This document shows, piece after piece, positions 39,203 through 62,383 of a DNA stretch of 64,000 nt. Within the stretch, counting starts at the first letter, position 1; every line of letters begins with the position of its first letter. A model generated the notes under the pieces. It saw only the letters and a program-made list of their open reading frames with translations, ran no database searches and was not told the origin of the DNA. A program made the position numbers and the translations under genes. The stretch covers positions 13,082,001 to 13,146,000 of the forward strand of contig OZ059899.1 of NCBI GenBank assembly GCA_964057225.1. Reading direction: 5' to 3'. Origin of the DNA: Auanema rhodensis. Its lineage: Eukaryota; Animalia; Nematoda.

Positions 39203-48682
<9,480 letters not shown>

Positions 48683-49222
48683 CTTCTGAAATAAAGTATA
48701 TCATAAAACTAAATTAAAGAAAGGGGAACGAAACAGAAAAATGTATATTAATGAATGAAATAAAGGAAAACACAGAGAACGTAAGGGAGTTAAAACCGAG
48801 GTAACTGCATCATTGTCCTGCATGAGAATGTTTACGAGATCAACGACTTTGTCATTTGAGAATGGTTGAAAGAAAGCTAGGGCGGAACATTGTTTAAGTT
48901 ATGCACCACAAGAGAGAATGAATAAACAAGATGATCCGCCTTTTTGCCAAATAGAATTAACAGATGTGCTAGAAAAAACCAAAGAAAAAGTTACTTGGCT
49001 AGGTTAGAGAGCAGTGTTTGTTGAATTGAGAAGAACAGTTCCATAATAATATATAAAATGACGAATACACTTAGCAGAGTTAGGTCCACTAGTAGGGTTG
49101 GCACAAATACAATTGGCACCGCTGTTCTTGCTATACTCAATACTCTACTTTGTGAAGTACCATCGTACAGAAAAATTCAAGTTCATATAAAGAAATGAGA
49201 AAATAATTCTATTAAAACTAAA

Positions 49223-49245: not shown

Positions 49246-52200
49246 CATATTTGCATGTGTATGTGCCTATGCATGTGTGCTAACAAAACAAAATATATCT
49301 CTATGTCCCATGCAGTAAAAATGAATTCCTCTAAGGAAATTAGCTCATATTGAAAAAAAGACGAAAAGAAAGATATGGTCTTCTTCTTCATTATGAGATT
49401 AGCTAGAAACTCTTGTCATAAACTAACTAAGTTGTGAGAACAAGAAAACTGCAAAAACAAACCACAGTGTTGTTCGACAGTATAAAGAGTAGAACAGGGA
49501 GCTTTTGAGATATATTAATATGTGATGATAGCTCACAGAATAATAATAAATAATAGTAAAACTAACAGTATTAAGAAGTATTATAAACTATAATATAATA
49601 AGTAATGCTTTATTGATTAGTTGAGATCAACATTTATCAATAAACTACATTTAAAATATGTGCTCACTACGTATTATTGCTTTTATAAATTGTAACTAAT
49701 TCAAAAAAATGTTTTTTGTGTATTTTAAAAACGTTATATGCGCGAAATTGAAAATGGCCCAGAATGATTTGATTCTAGGTCCAACATTAGAGAAGATAAT
49801 ATAGATAAATTTGATATTAAAGAGTGGTTTGCGAAAAAAATGGATAATTCTAGTTAAAGCAGAACATAATCCTTTCAGCTGTGAAGCCGTAAGTACGAAA
49901 AGAAAAAGAGAGTACTACCAAAGGTAATTCAACGTTAGTTTTAACTAAAGTGAGATCAGATGATATTGAATAACAGAAAGTTTAGAAAATTTCGTTTACC
50001 CATTATTGAAGTAGTAAAAATGGTTACAATTTCGAGATACTCAGCTAAATAAAGTCAAGAATTACATAGAATTTTAATGTAGCAAAAAATGAGCTTGTAA
50101 TACTAGGAAAACAGACAGACAACAGAAAACATAGTGAGCAGGAGTATTGAGAAGCAAGAGGGCGAAAGTAAAATAAAAAAACAAACAACCATTCTATATT
50201 TTACGAGAAGAATAAATGAGTTTTTCACGTAGTTGCTCAGGTGAGCTCACGTATTCTAATAATAAATGGCAATGCAAGTGGCAATGCACGTGGCTGCCAT
50301 ATCAAGTGGTTGATGTTAGAAAAACAGATGAATGGTACTATGCAAGTGATATACAAAAGGAACCAGAGGAGAACAAGACTATATTATGAAATAGCTGGCA
50401 AGAAGATGTTGTACTTTGAGAATTGAAAAAAAAACAGAATATTTTCTTCTATTAGCAATTTAAAAGAAGAACGAGCAAAGATGAAGAGGGATGAAAACGC
50501 AATTTTAGTAACGCTTGGTTTAATGTGAAAGATCGACTTTTCTTTATTGAATTTGGAATCAAGGCACTTGCTTGTAAGGAAAAAAATTATATTTTCTAAT
50601 ATAATAAATTAGAAATAAATATAGAATACATAGTATTTTTTACTGATGAAAAACTAAAGATTCCGGAAGAAAATAGGAAACAGTGATTTCCGGCTGTTGA
50701 AACAATTCAAACAGGATATAGAAACTTTACTTCTCGTTTTTTTGTGAAATAAAGTGTGCAAGGATAGCAATTTTTTCGATTTTAAATAAAAAAACAGGAA
50801 AAACGATGGTGGATAAGGGTGACGCTTGGGAAACTGAATGTCATCATCTAGTTGAAGCTCAAAAATCGCAAGACCAAAAAAAGAATTCAGAAAATATTAT
50901 TTAGAAATGAAGGCGGCGAATCAAAACCCTTGTGTTACATTCAACAGGCAGTGTTTATGGAAAAGCTGAAATTGAGCTGTCACACTTCGGTATATTTACA
51001 TGTTTCCTCGAAATCATTCATTATTACGTATGCAATATACACGTCATCTGAAGATATACTTTAAACGGTCAAATACTTGCTGAAAAAGCAATAAACGCTT
51101 TGGAGCAGTGAAAATAAGGATAGAAAAAGCCCAACAGTAATCATGAAGTTGCAAGCAAAAGTAGGAAAAGTTCAGGCTTTAATGTTGGGAAGAAATATAT
51201 GAAAGTATTGCTAAATGAAAAACCATATAGTTGTTAATGGAAGGGCAAAGCTCCAAAAGAAATAAGAGCAAATGAGAGAGAGAGAGAGAAGCATTAGAGA
51301 AAGGAAAGCAAAAAAGAATAGTAGACAGGGAGAGAAGTGGAAAGAGAATGGTAGAGAGACCGCAGAGTAAATTGAAGAGAATGCTTCAGTCTAATGGATG
51401 CCATTGATGCCATATTTATATAGCATAAATAAGAGAAAAAGGAATAGATTTCGTGAATGAAAAACAAAAAATTATGTAAAGCCGTGTCATCTCAAGAGCA
51501 GTCGTATTGATCTTGCAAATGAAGATACAAATGAAATCCAGACTTAATACCTTCATTAAGCCCAAAGTTGAATGAATATTTCAGTAGAATATCGGCAAAC
51601 CTTTCTAGAAAAACGGCAAAACTTCAACAGTCTTGCATTAACGAGTACAATTATTTAGCGAAACAAGAGGATATAAAGGTGCAAGCTTTCAGTTTATAAG
51701 TTCAAGATTGAAAGATCGCCTAATACCCTTCATTACAAATGTTTTTTAGATTGAAAAGTATAAAACCTTCAAAAGTCAAACACGAAGCATTCAATTTAAG
51801 AGCGAAGTGGATTAAAAAGCCACATGGAAGATTGATTTCAAACTACGTTTGGACTTTTAAAAAATGAAAAAGTCAGAAACTGAATGGCATTTTGACACGA
51901 ATACATACACGATGTCTTCGTGAAATTGAATTGATTTCATGACGTAAATTCAACATGAAAGACGGTCTTAGAATCAAATTTCCAGAAGGAAAATAACGAC
52001 GAAAAGGATGGAAAGAAACATTATGATTGAAGAGAAAAGCCAAGGATGCAAGGACAAGTTGAAGGTGCCTTGTCGCCTGATAATAGCCATGTGAGTGTGG
52101 GAGGAGGAGGCAGGACTGAGAGCTATAAAAGGAGAGAGAGGGGGAAGAGAGAATAAGCTAGTCAGCCATCGATTTCCTGGAAATTCGCATATGTAACTGA

Positions 52201-53727
52201 GCTTAAGCCTGAAAAAGGCAAGTGGGAAAGGTTCTTCTAAATATGCCTTCTAATATGGAAATTGAGAATAGAAAACGGATATTATATACATTCTTTTACC
52301 AAAAAAGTAAAAAAGCACATAAAAGAGGAAAGCAAAAAATAGCTGGAAAAAGAAGTAAAGAAGAAAATAAGTAAAAAATGAATAAGAATGCCGATTTAGT
52401 TTGTTCGTTGTGTCATGAAAGAACAACGAAAATAAATTGTATTAGCAATACCAGTATCATGTCGAGTGAGTAATTATTGACAAACGACGACAGCCATGAA
52501 ATATCCATTGACTGCAGAGAAAAGACAAAAAAAGCGAAAAGAATTGTAAAGATTGTAAAATTAAGATCCCCACCTGCTCGTCTTTCTTAAGATTCTTACG
52601 AGTAATCTTCTTTTCGTGGATAACCACGATTTGTGCTGCAATTGTTCGAAACGTCTTCTGAACAAGAACTGATTATTCCCGAGAACAATTGGTTTTCGAA
52701 ATGAAAAAGAGAATACGAGAGAGCAAGAGTAATAGTGAAGATAGGATGAGAACAGACGAAAAGAAATGTAGAAAAGAAGAGAAATAGAGAAAGAAAGATA
52801 AAAGGAATGCGAGAGATAAATATAATCGAAGAGGCAATGAAAAGAGAGAGAGAGTTAGAGGGAAACGGAAATGGAAACACTTGTAAAAACACAATTGTTT
52901 CTAAATTCAAATATGGAAGAGTCTTTGAGTCTTTCAAGTAGCTGGGTGATTTAAGCTAATTTTAATTTCAAAAAAACTAAAAAAAGACTGATAGGATGTT
53001 AAGGTTATCAAATCCGTCGCTTTGAGACTAAAACAAGACAATACCTTTAAGATATTATGAGGACTGGCGGTCGTCATACTGGATATAAGTAATAATTCTG
53101 CGAAGGAATTATGGGAATTATGAAATATGTGTATCCATATTTATTATTTCATTTTTTTAACAAGAAAGTTTAGAAAAAAATAGGAAAATGCGTGTTGTAG
53201 AAGGGTTCATGAATATAAAATCGTGATATAAACAGGAACGAGCTATACTTAGAGAGGAGAATACTAATTGGGAAGTCCGACGCGAGAAAGAGAGAGGGGA
53301 AGAATTAGAGAGGGAATAAGATAAAGAGAGAGAGAGAAAGTGAAAAATTGCTTATAGAAACTTCATTTCTTTTTTACCTTTGTTTTGCTTTTTTTTCTAA
53401 AGAAGAAAGGTATATCTCTAGTATATTCATGTATCTTCCAAGTTTTTGAAATAGTTTATTCAGGAACTTTCTTAAAAGAGAGAAACATTCGTTTTTTTGC
53501 TTTAGAACGTCTTTGTAAATAGCTAGTTTGTGTTTGAAGCTTTGTTTATGACTTTTTTTGTGTTGAAACATTTTAGTCATAAATGAGTAAAACAGGGAGA
53601 GGTTTTCATTCTGGGCACTGCTTTCCCTTTTCTTTTTTGAATTTGTAGCTTCTCGTGTCAAAATCCACAGAAAAAGCCAAGGGTATCATTCGCTAAACCT
53701 GATGGCAAATGCAAAAACATTGGTGTT

Positions 53728-53734
53728 TATAAAA
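53728..53734 (+). promoter_or_regulatory. TATA box of the small secreted-protein gene
   Basis: TATAAAA about 90 bp upstream of the ATG at 53821. Confidence 0.55.
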
Positions 53735-53820
53735 GAAGCTTCGGTAACATCTTGTCACCGTTCGTCACACATCAGTACATTGAACGTCAGTCTCTGTGTC
53801 AACTGCTAACCGAATAAGTG

Positions 53821-54659
53821 ATGATGATCAGATTCTTCACAGTTCTTCTCTTCTGCGTGGCTTTGGCTTCCTGTCAGGTAATAAAATCTTCTGAACATCA
53901 TCATCATCATCATCATCATCATTAGCTACGGCTGTCTCCGCTTTCAATTTAAATTCTGAATCTACATATTTGCATAATATCAATTATTCAGATGAATATC
54001 ATGCAAGCTTTGGCTGTAAAACAACGAGCGCAATCCTGCATGTCTGCTTATCTTCCACCTCAATCTTATGGTGTTCAACAACAATTGGCTGTAAGATATT
54101 TGTTTTCCTATTTAAGCATTATTTGAAAAATTGTTGTGAGCGATATGCCGGCTAAAGGTTAAAAATTTTGTGGAAGAAAGCAGAATGTTGAAGGAGAATG
54201 ATGATATGACTAGCACACAGTTGTGAGCAAGAGGCTGGGATGGAGAGAGGAGTGGGGAGGAAGGGAGCAGAATGAAGACAGACTCAAAATCGTCAAAGCG
54301 ACTAAGACTGAAGCCAATGCTAATACTGATCTTTACAGCTTCAGATTTTAGTCCAATCTGTGTATAATCAGCGAAAAAATTCTGATTTTTATTCAAATGA
54401 AATATGAAAGTGTCTGTTTAATATATTCAAAGATAGTATAAGAGATTGAGAGAGAGACATGATTTCTCATCTGCTGTTATGAGCGTGCCAGTGTTCAAAC
54501 GACTTCAAGACCAAAAATGAGTTTAATTTTAAGTTTGTTTTCTTTCATTTTAAGCTTTAGATGTGCTTTGATATGAATTGTGGCCGTAATATTATCAACC
54601 AAGTAATGGTCATGTATCCAGCTCATGTTCCTATGCTTCGTCGATGTCTCGGCTATTGA
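53821..54659 (+). CDS. Small secreted four-cysteine protein of unknown family, 84 aa, 3 exons (53821-53877, 53992-54090, 54561-54659)
   Basis: MMIRFFTVLLFCVALASCQ|MNIMQALAVKQRAQSCMSAYLPPQSYGVQQQLA|MCFDMNCGRNIINQVMVMYPAHVPMLRRCLGY*. Both introns are phase 0 with good sites (CAG|gtaata..ttcag, GCT|gtaaga..tttag). Exon 1 looks like a signal peptide; there is a TATA box upstream and AATAAA at 54700. Confidence 0.8.
53896..53922. repeat. (CAT)9 microsatellite in intron 1 of the small gene
   Basis: Nine perfect CAT units. Confidence 0.9.
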
Positions 54660-54699
54660 GATTCAGCTATGGAACATGCTTAGAAGAGAATGGAATTTG

Positions 54700-54705
54700 A
54701 ATAAA
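54700..54705 (+). terminator. Polyadenylation signal of the small secreted-protein gene
   Basis: AATAAA 40 nt after the TGA stop. Confidence 0.55.
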
Positions 54706-56190
54706 ACAAATGCTCAATATGATGTATATCTCTCCAAATTCATTTAATATTCTTTTAAAAGAATTAAAATTTAATAACAATTAATATGCACATATATATT
54801 TATAAATATATATATATATATCTAACTATATGAATGTATAACACCTAACAAACCATCTATATGAAGATTATGTTGAAAATGTTTCAGTTTTAAGTAATAA
54901 AGAATATGAAATTCATCTTTAAATATTGTTTTTTTTCTGCATAATTAGCAATTACGAGCTCGAACGATTGTGGAAAAGTGAGTATATGATTGAAAACGAA
55001 CAAACAATAATTCTTGAAAAGCGGAAAAGTAAACGTGCAAATGCTCGATCTGACTGAATCTGAAAAGGTATATTCTCTGAAAGTACATAACAAGGTCAAG
55101 ATGTATTATATGATCGAAGTTATAGTATATGCTATGCATATGTATGAAAAACAGTTTATATACATATACATATGTATAAATGTCTTTGTAAGTTGTATAT
55201 TATTATCTGACCTATTAAGGCTAAAAATGGTAAAAAAACACATTTCGTTTCGTATGTTTCTTCTTAATGCTTTATGGATGATGTGCGACGACTACTGATG
55301 AACTACTGACTGCTATGACAAGGAAGTCAAGAATATACACGGTTACTGTTCCTTTAGGATTCATAGGTTTACGTGATGTGGTGCTGACTGATGAGATGAG
55401 ATGAAGCTGATGATGACGATGATGATGATGCACGTTGCTGCGGCTGCAAGCCATCTTTCCATGTCTATCTGCAGACTTTCATGGCTTTAGCTGTGCAGCT
55501 ATTAAACAGTTTTTCTTCTCGTCTATTTACATGATGACATCACGAATGTTTGGAGTGAGTCGTCTGAATCCATATATATATGCATACATCTTGTATGAAG
55601 AGCAACCAAAATTAGAAATTTTCTATAATCTTCATAGTTTCATACATACATGTATCAATGTATGTGGAAATAGTTGTAACAAAAGGTTTATTATTTGCAG
55701 AAAAAAAAAGAAAAAAGTGTATAAAACACAAATGAAAATGTGAAATAATGATAAGTTGATGAAGTGATATGATTACCACATCAAGTTAGTATCACAATTC
55801 ATAGACCAAGTTTCAAAAAAATTATTTAAAATAATTATTAAACTGATACAAAACATATTATATTATGTATAGAAGACGTGTAAGGCCACTGGAATATTCT
55901 TCTAAAACGAAGAAGTTTACCTGTTTTCTTCTCAAAACAAGTATTTATTTTTGAAAAAGTACTCAAAATGTTCGAGTATGAGGGAAAGAAAGAGGGAGGG
56001 ATGTTGTCATTAGCAATTAAAGAGTAGGAAGAGAGGGAGTAAGAGTTGGGAGGGGGGGGAGGGATTGATGATGTTTAACGAATTATATAAGAATATTGTG
56101 GTTATATATTAAGCAGATAAAGCCAGTTAGAGGTTGAGAAGGTTATGATGAATGTAAAAGCAGAATAAGAAGAATATGACATATATATAT

Positions 56191-56592: not shown

Positions 56593-59500
56593 CTAGTCAT
56601 CTGCTATAGTTCGTAATCTCATTCGATGCTGTGGACTGGCTTCTTCACTGGTCATACTATTACGACGACCTCTGAAAATTGATAATTAGAAAAGGTTAAA
56701 GTTCATATGCTTTAGATTTGATAAATTAAGGTTTACAATATACAAGGAGATGCGGGAAATGATGTTTCAAGTTGTAACTTGTTCAGACTGACCGTATAAG
56801 TTCTGCTAAGTTTCCTATTTCACGTGATATATCGGATAATTGATGTTCAATAGCAGTGATACGAAGAGATAAGCCTTCCTGAGTTGAATGAACATCGTGC
56901 ATCAGCTCATATGAACTAGAAGAAGTCTGAAAACAATCGAAAAAGGTTGATTCAAGTTCAAATATAATGAAATTACCTTGGCAACATCACCTAACGATAC
57001 TAAATTTTCTGTTAATTTTCGTTGATCTCTCTTAACTTTTCTAAGTCTGAAAAATATTTTTATGTATATAGTTAAAGTGATTTTTAAACATACTCATAGA
57101 TAGCCACCAAAAATTTTCGTTGATGTTGACGAATCTTAGATAAATCAGCTTTATCAACTAATTTACGATATTTATAAATAAGCCAGGTTTCTCGTAACAC
57201 ATTAGCAGCTGAGTGTTTTAACTGAAATTATTATTCAAATTTATAATTATTTCAATGAAAATGATTATTTTTTTTTTTGATATTGTTGCTAACCTGTTTT
57301 GTTAGTTGTGTGTCCATCATGAAGCTATGTACATGCTTCTCAGCTCGTGTTAATTCTAGTTTCCTTGTAATGACAGCTACAACCATGGAAGAAGTACACG
57401 TACCCTAGAATATCATTTATTTCATTTATAATTGTTCTCAATAATCTATTTTTACATATTCACATACATTTCTTAATATTTTGAAGAAAATTAAACTTGA
57501 CAACAACCTGTTAACTGATCATTTTCTTCATGCATTCATGGCTTACGTGACCTTTACAGCTCCCTAACGTGAACTTTTGCATTTTCATGCGTCATCAGTT
57601 CAAGTAGAATGTTCGTATGTAGTATGACGTAAGAGCATTTTGCATTCAAATTTCAATATTATTTGTCAAAATTTCCATATTTACTTTCGACTTTTAAACT
57701 TTATTAAAAGAAAACTTGTTTATATCTATATGTATATTTTGAATAAACTTAAAATTTATTTTATATTTTTTACTTAAAAATGAATTAAAACCAACCAAAA
57801 TACCGGTGATTACAGCCATCACACGTCCACATTGTGTATGTGGCACTATATCACCTGGAAAACAAATATTATTATTATTATTATTATTAATATATTTTAA
57901 AAATTAATTAACATACCATAACCGACGGATAAGAATGTAATTGCTACCAACCAGATTGAACTTCCGTAATCTAATTCACGTGTTCTTGGAACAGACATCT
58001 CTCTGCAAAATCAACACAAATGAAACAAGTACTTGTATTTGACTTCATAGAGTATTATATTTTGTAAAGGATTATCAAGCTTTTACAAACCTTTCACACA
58101 AACGCAAAATCCAGCCAGCTATTATCCAAAGTGAAGCGGTGAAGACGATAAGCATTTTTCCTGAAAAATGTTTGAAAGTTCTAAGTTTTTGTAAAGTTGG
58201 TAATGTACCTGGACATAATGTCATTAATGTTTTCAAGATAAATCTGGCATTGAAGTTGACACGATTGAGTCCGGCAATACTTCGACTGCTTGCATCGGTA
58301 AATAATCTAAAAATCATATTTCCCTGTTAAGAGATAGGTCTGAGGATACGAACCTAGAGTGAAGCAGCATGACACGACAAAGCCAATAAAGACGAAAGAA
58401 CATTGAAATGGAAAATAATACATTTAATGAATGTAAACTCTGAAAATAAAAACATTAATCAGCTTAATCTTTCAAGGAACAGGAGAGGAAAGCTTAGACA
58501 ATGTTGTTTGTGAGCTCAAGCTCAACATGAAATTAAAAAATTTTTCCAATTTTCAAAAGAGTTTTGGTTTGTTGTTCTAAACTTAAAATCAAATAGTAAA
58601 CATACATTATGTGTTTCTACACTACTGAATGTGCCAAGTTCAAGAGGTAATGGACAGACAGAGCATATGCAGACTTCAACCAGTATCTGTGAAACTCGAT
58701 TAGTTGTTAATGATACTCGCCAATCATCCGCAGCATTTGCATTCATAAACAACTGAAAATATAAGAATTTTTATGATTTGTTAAAGCTCAACAACATCAA
58801 ATTCGTATAATATATTGGAATTTTGTTTTGTTTTAATCTACTAAATGATAGTTGTTTTCAAATTTTTCGATGCATTACTTCTCATTATTGAAATGAAATG
58901 CTTAAATATTTACCTGAACATCAATTACATGAAAATATCCGACATAAACAATAAGTACAAGTGTTGAACCGAGAATACATGCTTTAAGAGCTAAACTCTC
59001 GAGTGAACCCTTAAATTATTGAAAATTTAGTTTGAAATTCGAAAAATACTGACCGCGTCAATAAGGTTGGTGGAACGTAGCTCGCTTTCCAACATCATTA
59101 AAACTGAAAATACACGAATAATTTGAAAACAAACGATAAGTTATAGCTATACGAATGATGATTACTATGCTGATTATCATTTGAAATAGAAGAAGCAAAA
59201 CACAAATTGAGCTTATTAACGAACTACTAACCTATTCCAAGAATGGCAAAGGTGAGTGCTCGGTCACATGTAATACGTCGCTTCTCATGAAGTTGCTCAC
59301 GTTTAATCAATCGACCACCACTAAAAAGTTTATAAAATTATTTAAAATATTATGTTTAGTTAGATATCTAATGAATTTATTTTTTTCAAAATAAAAATAA
59401 ACAGCTATTCATATCTATTGATCGTATTGTTGATTGACGTTCGTTTTCGTTCATCTGATGTCTTATACCCCCACGTCGGACGACGTCAATCGAAAGTCAA

Positions 59501-62263
59501 TCGTCAAAACGATATAAACAGATAAATTAATGAAAATAAAAGAAAAAACTCTTCTACTAGCTATAGTTTAGTTGATGTGAAATCAAGATATTATCATTGA
59601 AATCACAACAAGTTTATGAGAAGTATTGAAAAATGAAACATAAAAATGCTTGTATTGATTGATTTGTTTACTATTTGTTTTGAAAATAAAATATTAAAAA
59701 GACAAAAAGAAAACAGATTTTAGTTGTTTTTGTTTGGTTTGTGATACTGATCTACTACTTTTGAGAAGAAGAACACGAAATCTACATCTAATACCATCAT
59801 TATACTTCAAGTTTATCTTCATTTCTCGTCCTCATCATCATCAATTGTGAAGAGCTAAAACTTTTTAAAAAAAATTCAAATCAAAGAATTTTTAACTATT
59901 ATTGATTTCTTTAATTATAATTTTTATAAAATGTAAAATCAATAGATGATATGAGGATGAGAAATTTGAAGAATTTGCGCTGGGACGATAATAGGTTTAG
60001 AATGAAAATGGTTTAACAGCTAGATTGCCAACTAAAATTTACTAATTTAAGGAAAAAACCATTATACTATTCAAATAAAAAAATAAAAAAATGACTATAA
60101 TACAAATAGAAAAAAACATTATTTCTACATTATGTAATCTGATTTGTTTTAATAATTTCAAAACACAAAAACAAAACGAAAAACACGTAAAAATCAGAGA
60201 ACACGTCATGATTTTCCTAAAAAAATCAAGCGAGGTGCTTACCTTTCCAGAAAGTGTATATATCTAAATAGGATAAGCTAAATTATAAATCATAGAATAA
60301 AATGTTTTAATTTTTAATTTTCAGTTTTGTATATGATATTTCAAATCTTCAAAAAGTATGCTTTTCCTCTTTCTTCGTATCTATCTATCCTTTGCACGCA
60401 ACCCCCCTCCCCCCCTCCTGCTATCTCCGCTCTTTCCCTCTTTATGGTATTATGTGGCAAATTTTACTTTCATACTCCTTCGTCGTATTTTTTTTTTGCG
60501 AACAAACAAATAACATTTAGAATAAAACAAAAATATATTTATATATTTATATAGCTCCTTATGAGCTACATCATATCAACCTCAAACCAATTTATTCTTT
60601 CACCTTCTCTCAGAAAAACTGCTTCTCTCTCTCTTTCTCTCTCTCTCTATATATATATCTTTTACTTATATATATATATATACTGTTTTTCGATCTTAGT
60701 CTTGTTGTATGTTGGCAAACTAACATCATCATTTGTTTGTAATAAAAAGAAATATAAGATAAAAAGGGAAAAATAAAACTATTTGAGAAATAATAGGAAG
60801 AGCATTATCATCATTGTCATTTCACGTGCAAATTTTGAGCACTACACGTAAACAAAGAATAACAAAAACTAAAAAAAAGTTCGAAAGGTTGTTCAGATTT
60901 AGATGAAATCAGTGCAACAGAGTGCGTATGTGCATATGTATGTATAGGTGACTTTAGGGTTTGAAGGTTGTGGAAGTCGAGGTGTGGGAATCATATTGGC
61001 TTGTATTTGCAAATGATTTTCTGACAATTTCTCTAAGATATTTATATTTAATTAGAAAATCTATAAAATCTAAATTTAGATAGATAGATTGTATATTTAG
61101 ATATCTCTAACTAGATTGCTTTTGTTTTGAGTTTCTGAGTGTTGAGTTACCTATTATCCTCTTTTTCTTCCATAAGAGGAGTCTCTGAATCATCCACATT
61201 CTTCTGTCCTTCAATATCATTTGAATATGCTATGGAGACTGATTTGCGTGATGCTATTTCACCTGAAAATATCATAGAAAATTATTATATTCTGACAGTT
61301 CAATTGAAAAAGCTTTTCCAGGTCCGTCCCCTACTAACTTCTGCTTCCAGTTTTTCATATAACGTATTAGCTAGCAAACAAAAGACTTGACCTTTTTCAG
61401 TTCACTTTTACATACATTTAGCAACTTTAGAAAATTTCTGAACTTTTAACCAGAATTCCATATAAATCTAACGTATCCATCTCAACAACTGTTTTGCAGA
61501 AAAAAGTCAGAAGTATGTACTTTTCAGTTTACTATTGCTACTTTTTCGAAAAAAATATTTTAAAATAGAACGAACTCGGCCATGCGGATGGTCGTCTACC
61601 TTGTGGCATACTTCGTTTTCGATCGGAATTAATCCAACTAAGTCCTTGTGGTCCTAAAATTCGACGCAAAAGTGCCTGCTCTTTCGATGGGAGATACGCC
61701 ATACTCATCCGGCGAGTTCCGTTCATCATGTCATGTGTGGAGCAACATCGAGTTGCACCAGGACAAGCGGAACAGCCATCGGAACACCCGATGACTGCTC
61801 CATTGAACGGTATACGAAATGTGCTCTCACTGTTACTGCGTTGTTGAAGATTCTGCAAGCGATAACGTCCCGGATCTTTCTTGCGTGAGCTGCATCGTTG
61901 CGTTACGCTCAGTGTCTGAAGCGATGGAGCTAGCGGTGGAGCTGGTGATGATGACGATGGTAAGCATCTTGAACCACGTTCAAACATATGATATGAGCCT
62001 GATTGTGAAACACAGCTACTTTTAGCTGATGGCACTGGCGATGAAGAACTACACATTACATCGAAAGATAGTTGTTTCGGAGCAGCTTGAAGACGAGGAG
62101 CTCGTAGAATGCCTCTCGGAGTTGTATCTGCGGTTGTCGGAACTGACATAGTCATCAGATAGTGTTCGGGTGGATGATCCGGAGTTGTTGCAGCACTATG
62201 ACTTGCGCTAGCGCCGGCTGATGCAGCCGCAGTAGAACCAGCCTCATGTCCTGTGGCAGTCAT
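56593..62263 (-). CDS. kcnl-2: Small-conductance Ca2+-activated K+ (SK/KCNN) channel; further 5' exons may lie upstream
   Basis: Large Ser/Ala-rich exon 61600-62263; SNDIEGQK...TPLMEEK; [15 protein letters not shown]; [13 protein letters not shown]; [50 protein letters not shown]; pore ITFLSVGY|[11 protein letters not shown]; calmodulin-binding region [19 protein letters not shown]...[13 protein letters not shown]...HQRKFL. Stop at 56593-56595. Confidence 0.93.
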
Positions 62264-62383
62264 ACTTGTAGGCTAATGAGCAGAAGTTTGATTGGCAAGT
62301 TCAAATAAAGTATGCTGAAGAAATTAATAATATTATAATAAACCTTCAGAGACAGAAAGAAGTTGATAGATTGATAGTAAGAA

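Follow-up and report, generated by a model that had tools for sequence, protein, structure and literature searches.

Does the Auanema rhodensis DNA between a protein kinase gene and a potassium channel gene hold a gene for a small secreted protein, to which family would that protein belong, and what might it do? A sequence-only reading of the window (the whole stretch of 64,000 nucleotides analysed here, AT-rich at ~34% G+C) had proposed such a gene, in three exons, and had described its product as unassigned, cationic and Met-rich, the best novelty candidate in the window and perhaps an antimicrobial or inducible effector. We consider it probable that this is a real rhabditid gene, the orthologue of CAI4230072.1 of Auanema sp. 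JU1783 and a member of the C27B7.9 family, and that it encodes a secreted two-disulfide four-helix bundle whose most likely role is that of an extracellular ligand or binding partner.

A three-exon gene and its orthologue in Auanema sp. JU1783

The gene model (Table 1) runs from a TATA-like box through three exons to a poly(A) signal. Both introns have canonical GT-AG borders in phase 0, and the structure of the orthologue agrees with them, so that the complete three-exon gene stands as it had been drawn. The TATA box and the AATAAA are also present as reported, each being weak evidence individually: TATAAA at 53728 is the sole occurrence between 53500 and 53900 (chance ~0.05 per 100 nt), and for AATAAA the chance of an occurrence is ~0.2 per 100 nt in a window this rich in AT. 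The product of exon 1 combines a basic n-region (MMIR), a 12-residue hydrophobic core (mean Kyte-Doolittle 2.8) and a small-residue c-region (SC), followed by Gln; the signal peptide of the window gene was called on hydrophobicity only. Counted exon by exon, the mature chain has 66 residues with the Cys spacing C-x18-C-x4-C-x21-C, and it contains 8 Met, 5 Lys/Arg, 1 Asp and no Glu, which bears out the signal-peptide exon, the mature chain of ~66 aa and the composition given in the sequence-only reading. Intron 1 carries a (CAT)9 microsatellite (53896-53922); were this intron retained, nine consecutive His would follow the signal peptide.

Table 1. Features of the gene model, its neighbours and the second copy (window positions unless a contig or locus is named)
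Feature	Position	Strand	Remarks
Protein kinase gene	42004-48697	-	collinear with Auanema sp. JU1783 contig CALQYR020007456.1
TATA-like box TATAAAA	53728-53734	+	read directly; 93 nt upstream of the ATG at 53821
Exon 1, 19 codons: initiator ATG and signal peptide	53821-53877	+	donor CAG/gtaata
Intron 1, 114 nt, phase 0	53878-53991	+	GT...AG borders
Exon 2, 33 codons: helix 1, first Cys, Leu-Pro turn, helix 2 (helices predicted)	53992-54090	+	acceptor ttattcag/, donor GCT/gtaaga
Intron 2, 470 nt, phase 0	54091-54560	+	donor GCT/gtaaga, acceptor gctttag/
Exon 3, 32 codons (54561-54656) and TGA (54657-54659): Cys-x4-Cys, helices 3 and 4 (predicted), last Cys, C-terminal Gly-Tyr	54561-54659	+	acceptor gctttag/
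AATAAA poly(A) signal	54700-54705	+	starts 41 nt past the stop codon
SK-type calcium-activated potassium channel gene	56596-62266	-	collinear with CALQYR020007456.1
Paralogue	G000:C6:10841005-10841327 (= L003:1283-1605)		two exons
Paralogue, signal-peptide exon	L003:1283-1342		followed by a 44-nt phase-0 intron
Paralogue, mature-domain exon	L003:1387-1605		entire domain in one exon

The window exons were searched singly, not as one joined protein. Exon 2 aligned with residues 20-52 of CAI4230072.1, an 84-aa protein of Auanema sp. JU1783 (82% identity, E 4e-19), and exon 3 with residues 53-84 (78% identity, E 5e-20); the two alignments abut, with no gap and no overlap across the junction. The gene for CAI4230072.1 has exons of 57, 99 and 96 nt, and both of its introns lie at codons identical to those of the window gene. 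Because exons 2 and 3 match contiguous residues of the orthologue, and because exon lengths and intron positions agree, the arrangement is far beyond chance. Judged by these comparisons, the exons in the window are those of a real and complete three-exon gene, the splicing of which in A. rhodensis we infer from its orthologues.

The two Auanema proteins have in common their four-Cys spacing, an N-terminal Gln after ...SC and a C-terminal ...CLGY, and exon 1 in Auanema sp. JU1783 is likewise 57 nt long and ends ...SCQ/gt. They differ in other respects: the signal peptide of CAI4230072.1 has diverged (5/19 residues identical to the window protein, with the hydrophobic character kept), its introns measure 47 and 85 nt vs. 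114 and 470 nt in the window, and it has 6 Met and a net charge of +2, vs. 8 Met and +4. Upstream of the ATG, the orthologue has TATATAAAG inside the last ~50 nt. At the DNA level, conservation of the gene between the two species covers the two mature-peptide exons only (the exon 2 block spans 53985-54092); the introns and the promoter DNA around the TATA box are not conserved.

The surroundings are conserved as well. A 16-kb locus of Auanema sp. JU1783 is collinear with 42-62 kb of the window and holds the kinase (-), the small gene (+) and the SK channel (-) in the same arrangement, with identities of about 50-100% for the kinase and channel exons, which marks the two genomes as fairly close relatives. 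We compared codons with the Auanema sp. JU1783 gene, making the counts per exon and summing them afterwards. Exon 2 gave pN 0.08 and pS 0.77, exon 3 gave pN 0.14 and pS 0.77, and the summed dN/dS was ~0.06 with synonymous sites saturated. The mature-domain exons are under strong purifying selection.

A second copy and a family that reaches C. elegans

A search of the 181-Mb A. rhodensis genome with exon 3 returned one further locus, on contig C6 (E 0.005; the window itself lies on contig C7), and the genome holds only these two copies. Like the window gene, the paralogue encodes its signal peptide in a separate exon, which a phase-0 intron ends at roughly the same position, and its TATAAAA lies 89 nt upstream of the ATG. 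The first half of its mature exon matches exon 2 of the window gene and the second half matches exon 3, so this single exon reads straight through the point at which the window gene has its 470-nt intron. The encoded domain has the Cys spacing C-x20-C-x4-C-x21-C and the Leu-Pro, Cys-Gly and Tyr-Pro-x-x-Val-Pro motifs of the window protein; it differs from window-type proteins in its lack of the second intron, in its identity to them of 24-39%, in its net charge of +1 and in a three-residue C-terminal extension that ends in Gly-Phe. No annotated counterpart of the paralogue in other species was found by the word-index and HMMER protein searches.

For an exhaustive HMMER protein search we built a profile in which the paralogue exon and each of the two window exons formed a row of its own. 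It matched three full-length proteins of 84-91 aa, all of them unnamed products, from Auanema sp. JU1783 (CAI4230072.1; E 3e-24), C. auriculariae (E 6e-9) and Caenorhabditis sp. 36 (E 3e-5). A word-index protein search with the paralogue exon and with alignment A1 had given no match. That blank was a false one: exon 2 and CAI4230072.1 have more than 10 five-residue words in common, and HMMER found the protein. Once extended with the first matches, the profile reached C. japonica, C. nigoni, C. briggsae (CBG21719), C. remanei, C. brenneri, C. angaria and C. elegans, where the member is C27B7.9 (NP_001021334.1, CAE17700.1, Q7YTR9; locus L008:8001-8508); CAI4230072.1 matches the C27B7.9 protein at E 9e-20.

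The two introns of C27B7.9 fall at the same two alignment positions (...AY/KV... and ...LA/VC...), and its coding sequence is uninterrupted on L009, a contig built from the data of a public sequencing run, which we read as a spliced transcript. C27B7.9 and its Caenorhabditis orthologues consist, like the Auanema proteins, of a signal peptide and a mature domain, the latter here of ~67 aa. The identity between C27B7.9-type and Auanema-type proteins is only 33-40%; the former are markedly more basic (net +6 to +9), carry a Lys-Lys-Arg stretch in helix 1 and have a two-residue insertion after Leu-Pro. The neighbours of C27B7.9 also differ from those in the window, being a rap-1-like GTPase gene and an Ig/FN3 gene. 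Within Caenorhabditis the protein has changed little, the mature domain of C. elegans being 94% identical to that of C. briggsae and 85% identical to that of C. angaria; its conservation is well above that of most small secreted proteins.

We aligned 11 proteins with the paralogue exon and the two window exons, 14 rows in all (alignment A4). Columns R31, C35, L40, P41, C54, C59, V67, P72, P76, C81 and G83 are held in at least 90% of the rows, and the window exons carry all of these near-invariant residues. The family signature thus consists of four invariant Cys (C-x18..20-C-x4-C-x21-C), a near-invariant Arg in helix 1, Leu-Pro, a Val, two Pro and a C-terminal Gly-Tyr or Gly-Phe. In addition to this residue signature, the window gene has similarity over the whole mature domain, a signal-peptide exon and the two fixed phase-0 introns that go with C27B7.9-like genes. 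On these grounds we assign it as the orthologue of CAI4230072.1, in the C27B7.9 family, which is catalogued and without an assigned function.

Two parts of the sequence-only reading had to be revised in light of this family. Its protein is no longer unassigned, nor the best novelty candidate, given that orthologues are annotated in at least nine species of Caenorhabditis as well as in Auanema sp. JU1783, all of them functionally uncharacterised. Furthermore, cationic and Met-rich cannot serve as defining traits, since the mature-domain net charge ranges from +1 (C. auriculariae and the paralogue) through +2 (Auanema sp. JU1783) to +9 (C. elegans) and the Met count from 2 to 8; positive charge and Met-richness are not family traits. 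The family was seen in Auanema sp. JU1783, A. rhodensis and Caenorhabditis only; Auanema sp. JU1783 yielded one protein, as did every Caenorhabditis species, with no family expansion. As for expression, C27B7.9 is expressed and is listed among four genes that were rhythmic in all three analyses of a preprint (bioRxiv 10.1101/2024.07.06.602329), the text of which is the only mention of C27B7.9 that our literature search returned.

Predicted fold, known families and the insulin label

AlphaFold2 predicted four helices for the paralogue domain (mean pLDDT 87.9, pTM 0.71) and the same helices, after the signal peptide, for CAI4230072.1 (pLDDT 75.6). With good confidence, the mature domain is thus predicted to adopt a four-helix fold, in line with the helical protein that had been anticipated. 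When we compared the paralogue model with the PDB in Foldseek, no match fell below E 2, and VIA-align over 48,161 chains, together with a second look at the Foldseek list, returned generic helical bundles only (Z ≤7.5, a range that the tool itself calls common for helical models). Matches in the ESM Atlas scored <0.85, and the structural neighbours there were generic helical bacterial proteins. No Pfam family matched the window exons, the paralogue or any homologue, and the only scores were sub-threshold noise (DUF2664, KRBA1, Toddler). No known family or solved fold clearly matches the mature domain.

Two candidate relatives were examined and set aside. DUF2664 (PF10867) scored with exon 2 alone (13.6-14.2 bits, E 0.06-0.1; curated cut-off 22 bits), and with neither the 82%-identical orthologue nor the paralogue nor any other member; a DUF2664 search of the A. 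rhodensis genome gave no match, and as 14 control genomes were equally blank this does not demonstrate absence. The only PDB profile match was honeybee ASP1 (E 0.05), the alignment of which looks spurious because it extends through the signal peptide and pairs a conserved query Cys with a non-Cys residue.

Saposin-like proteins (caenopores) are small, secreted, disulfide-braced helical bundles of nematodes, with six Cys in three disulfides. The C27B7.9-like family, in contrast, has four Cys, with no SapB profile match and no saposin in the structure lists; defensin-like families and folds were equally absent from the Pfam, Foldseek and VIA results. The statement that the protein lacks the six-Cys patterns of saposins and insulins is therefore upheld.

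An insulin relationship calls for closer attention, as NCBI nr and UniRef name CAE17700.1/Q7YTR9 'INSulin related', whereas another source lists it as uncharacterised. Members of the ins family, like the C27B7.9-like proteins, are small, secreted, helical, disulfide-bonded nematode proteins. The insulin framework consists of a B-chain C-x11-C and an A-chain CC-x3-C-x8-C. That framework is absent here, where there are four Cys only, at spacings of 18-20, 4 and 21, and no Cys-Cys pair. None of the 14 rows of A4 matched the insulin profile HMMs (PF00049; Ins_beta, PF03488), even at E up to 10, and we rejected an insulin assignment for the window gene on the Cys framework and the profiles together. 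The Foldseek list and both VIA lists were also free of insulin, IGF and relaxin chains, although a missing match is no proof of a different fold.

The literature gives the same picture. Reviews dated 2024 and 2026 keep the number of insulin-like genes at 40 (ins-1 to ins-39 and daf-28); we found no paper that gives C27B7.9 an ins name and no papers on worm ins-40 to ins-44, and the source of 'INSulin related' could not be traced. One of the 40, ins-38, is located on chromosome II, and C27B7.9 lies on record BX284604. We take BX284604 to be C. elegans chromosome IV, and the two are thus different genes. Nothing tested supports the 'INSulin related' label for C27B7.9.

Possible role of the protein, and conserved DNA beside the gene

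We envisage that the 85-residue precursor would enter the ER by its N-terminal signal peptide, and that cleavage after ...ASC would leave an N-terminal Gln, which may cyclise. The four Cys would form two disulfides, in a pairing that we infer, and would thereby lock a compact four-helix bundle; the folded protein would then be secreted and might act, in the manner of a hormone or cytokine, as the ligand or partner of an equally conserved protein. We reasoned that a ligand or partner of a conserved protein is the most likely role given one protein per species, strong constraint and very well conserved surface residues, an argument that covers a narrow clade, since it draws on two Auanema species and Caenorhabditis. 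Taken by itself, the ligand or partner step, as read from these patterns of conservation, falls at or somewhat short of an even call, and it would fit better than an antimicrobial effector.

The latter would be a cationic helical peptide, induced from the TATA promoter, with the membranes of microbes as its target of damage. It would agree with a small, secreted, disulfide-stabilised and predicted helical protein, with a net charge that is positive in most members and with the TATA-like box; however, the charge is not conserved, each species has a single protein with no expansion of the family, no saposin-like or defensin-like match was obtained, and purifying selection is very strong, to the point of near-identity across Elegans-group species. 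Nematode antimicrobial families usually show the opposite of strong conservation. We accordingly regard an antimicrobial or immune effector as unlikely, and a fast-evolving effector role for the window protein is also unlikely; the antimicrobial or inducible effector of the sequence-only reading fits poorly with one protein per species, no expansion and a dN/dS of ~0.06. Alternatively, the helical bundle could be a small carrier that holds a hydrophobic ligand (a lipid or pheromone), in the way of insect chemosensory and odorant-binding proteins. Insect chemosensory proteins do appear low in the Foldseek list (probability ≤0.12), ASP1 gave its marginal profile match, and hydrophobic and Met residues abound in the interior; yet the ASP1 alignment looks spurious, the TM-scores are <0.4, the Cys frameworks differ from those of the insect proteins and a bundle of 66 residues would probably leave little room for a cavity, all of which makes a carrier quite unlikely.

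Two further readings are weaker again. A very divergent insulin-like peptide with DAF-2 as its receptor is suggested by the database name and by the small, secreted, helical and disulfide-bonded nature of the protein; the missing A-chain Cys-Cys pair and B-chain spacing, the blank Pfam and structure searches, and reviews that keep to 40 genes up to 2026 with no ins name for C27B7.9 in any paper found argue against it, and we consider it very unlikely. Finally, the locus could be no gene at all but three chance open frames with splice-like borders, given that every exon is short and that TATA and AATAAA are common in AT-rich DNA. Such a coincidence is hardly credible beside an orthologue with identical exon lengths and junctions, a paralogue, conserved synteny, a summed dN/dS of ~0.06 and a C. 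elegans contig read as a spliced transcript.

Returning to a secreted ligand, a bolder version would make the C27B7.9-like proteins an unrecognised class of nematode extracellular ligands, with their own two-disulfide four-helix fold, for which no solved counterpart exists, and a conserved receptor; in this class A. rhodensis would have two diverged ligands; this we regard as possible, if doubtful. Were the ligand role true, the family would provide a new signalling molecule for a well-mapped animal, and C27B7.9 makes the family directly testable in C. elegans. As it stands, the locus holds an ordinary conserved gene that was invisible to a mechanical ORF list, and what has been gained is one orthologue and one unannotated paralogue for a small family, restricted to nematodes, without a Pfam entry or a solved fold.

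The DNA that separates the small gene from the kinase gene's 5' end also contains four collinear non-coding blocks (window 50852-50883, 51203-51493, 52049-52292 and 52591-52675) that are 69-88% identical to the Auanema sp. JU1783 locus (L007:5834-7347), even though synonymous sites between both species are saturated. Rfam gave no match over window 50500-55200, and the blocks are without a long ORF; a role as regulatory elements is possible, as is one as untranslated exons.
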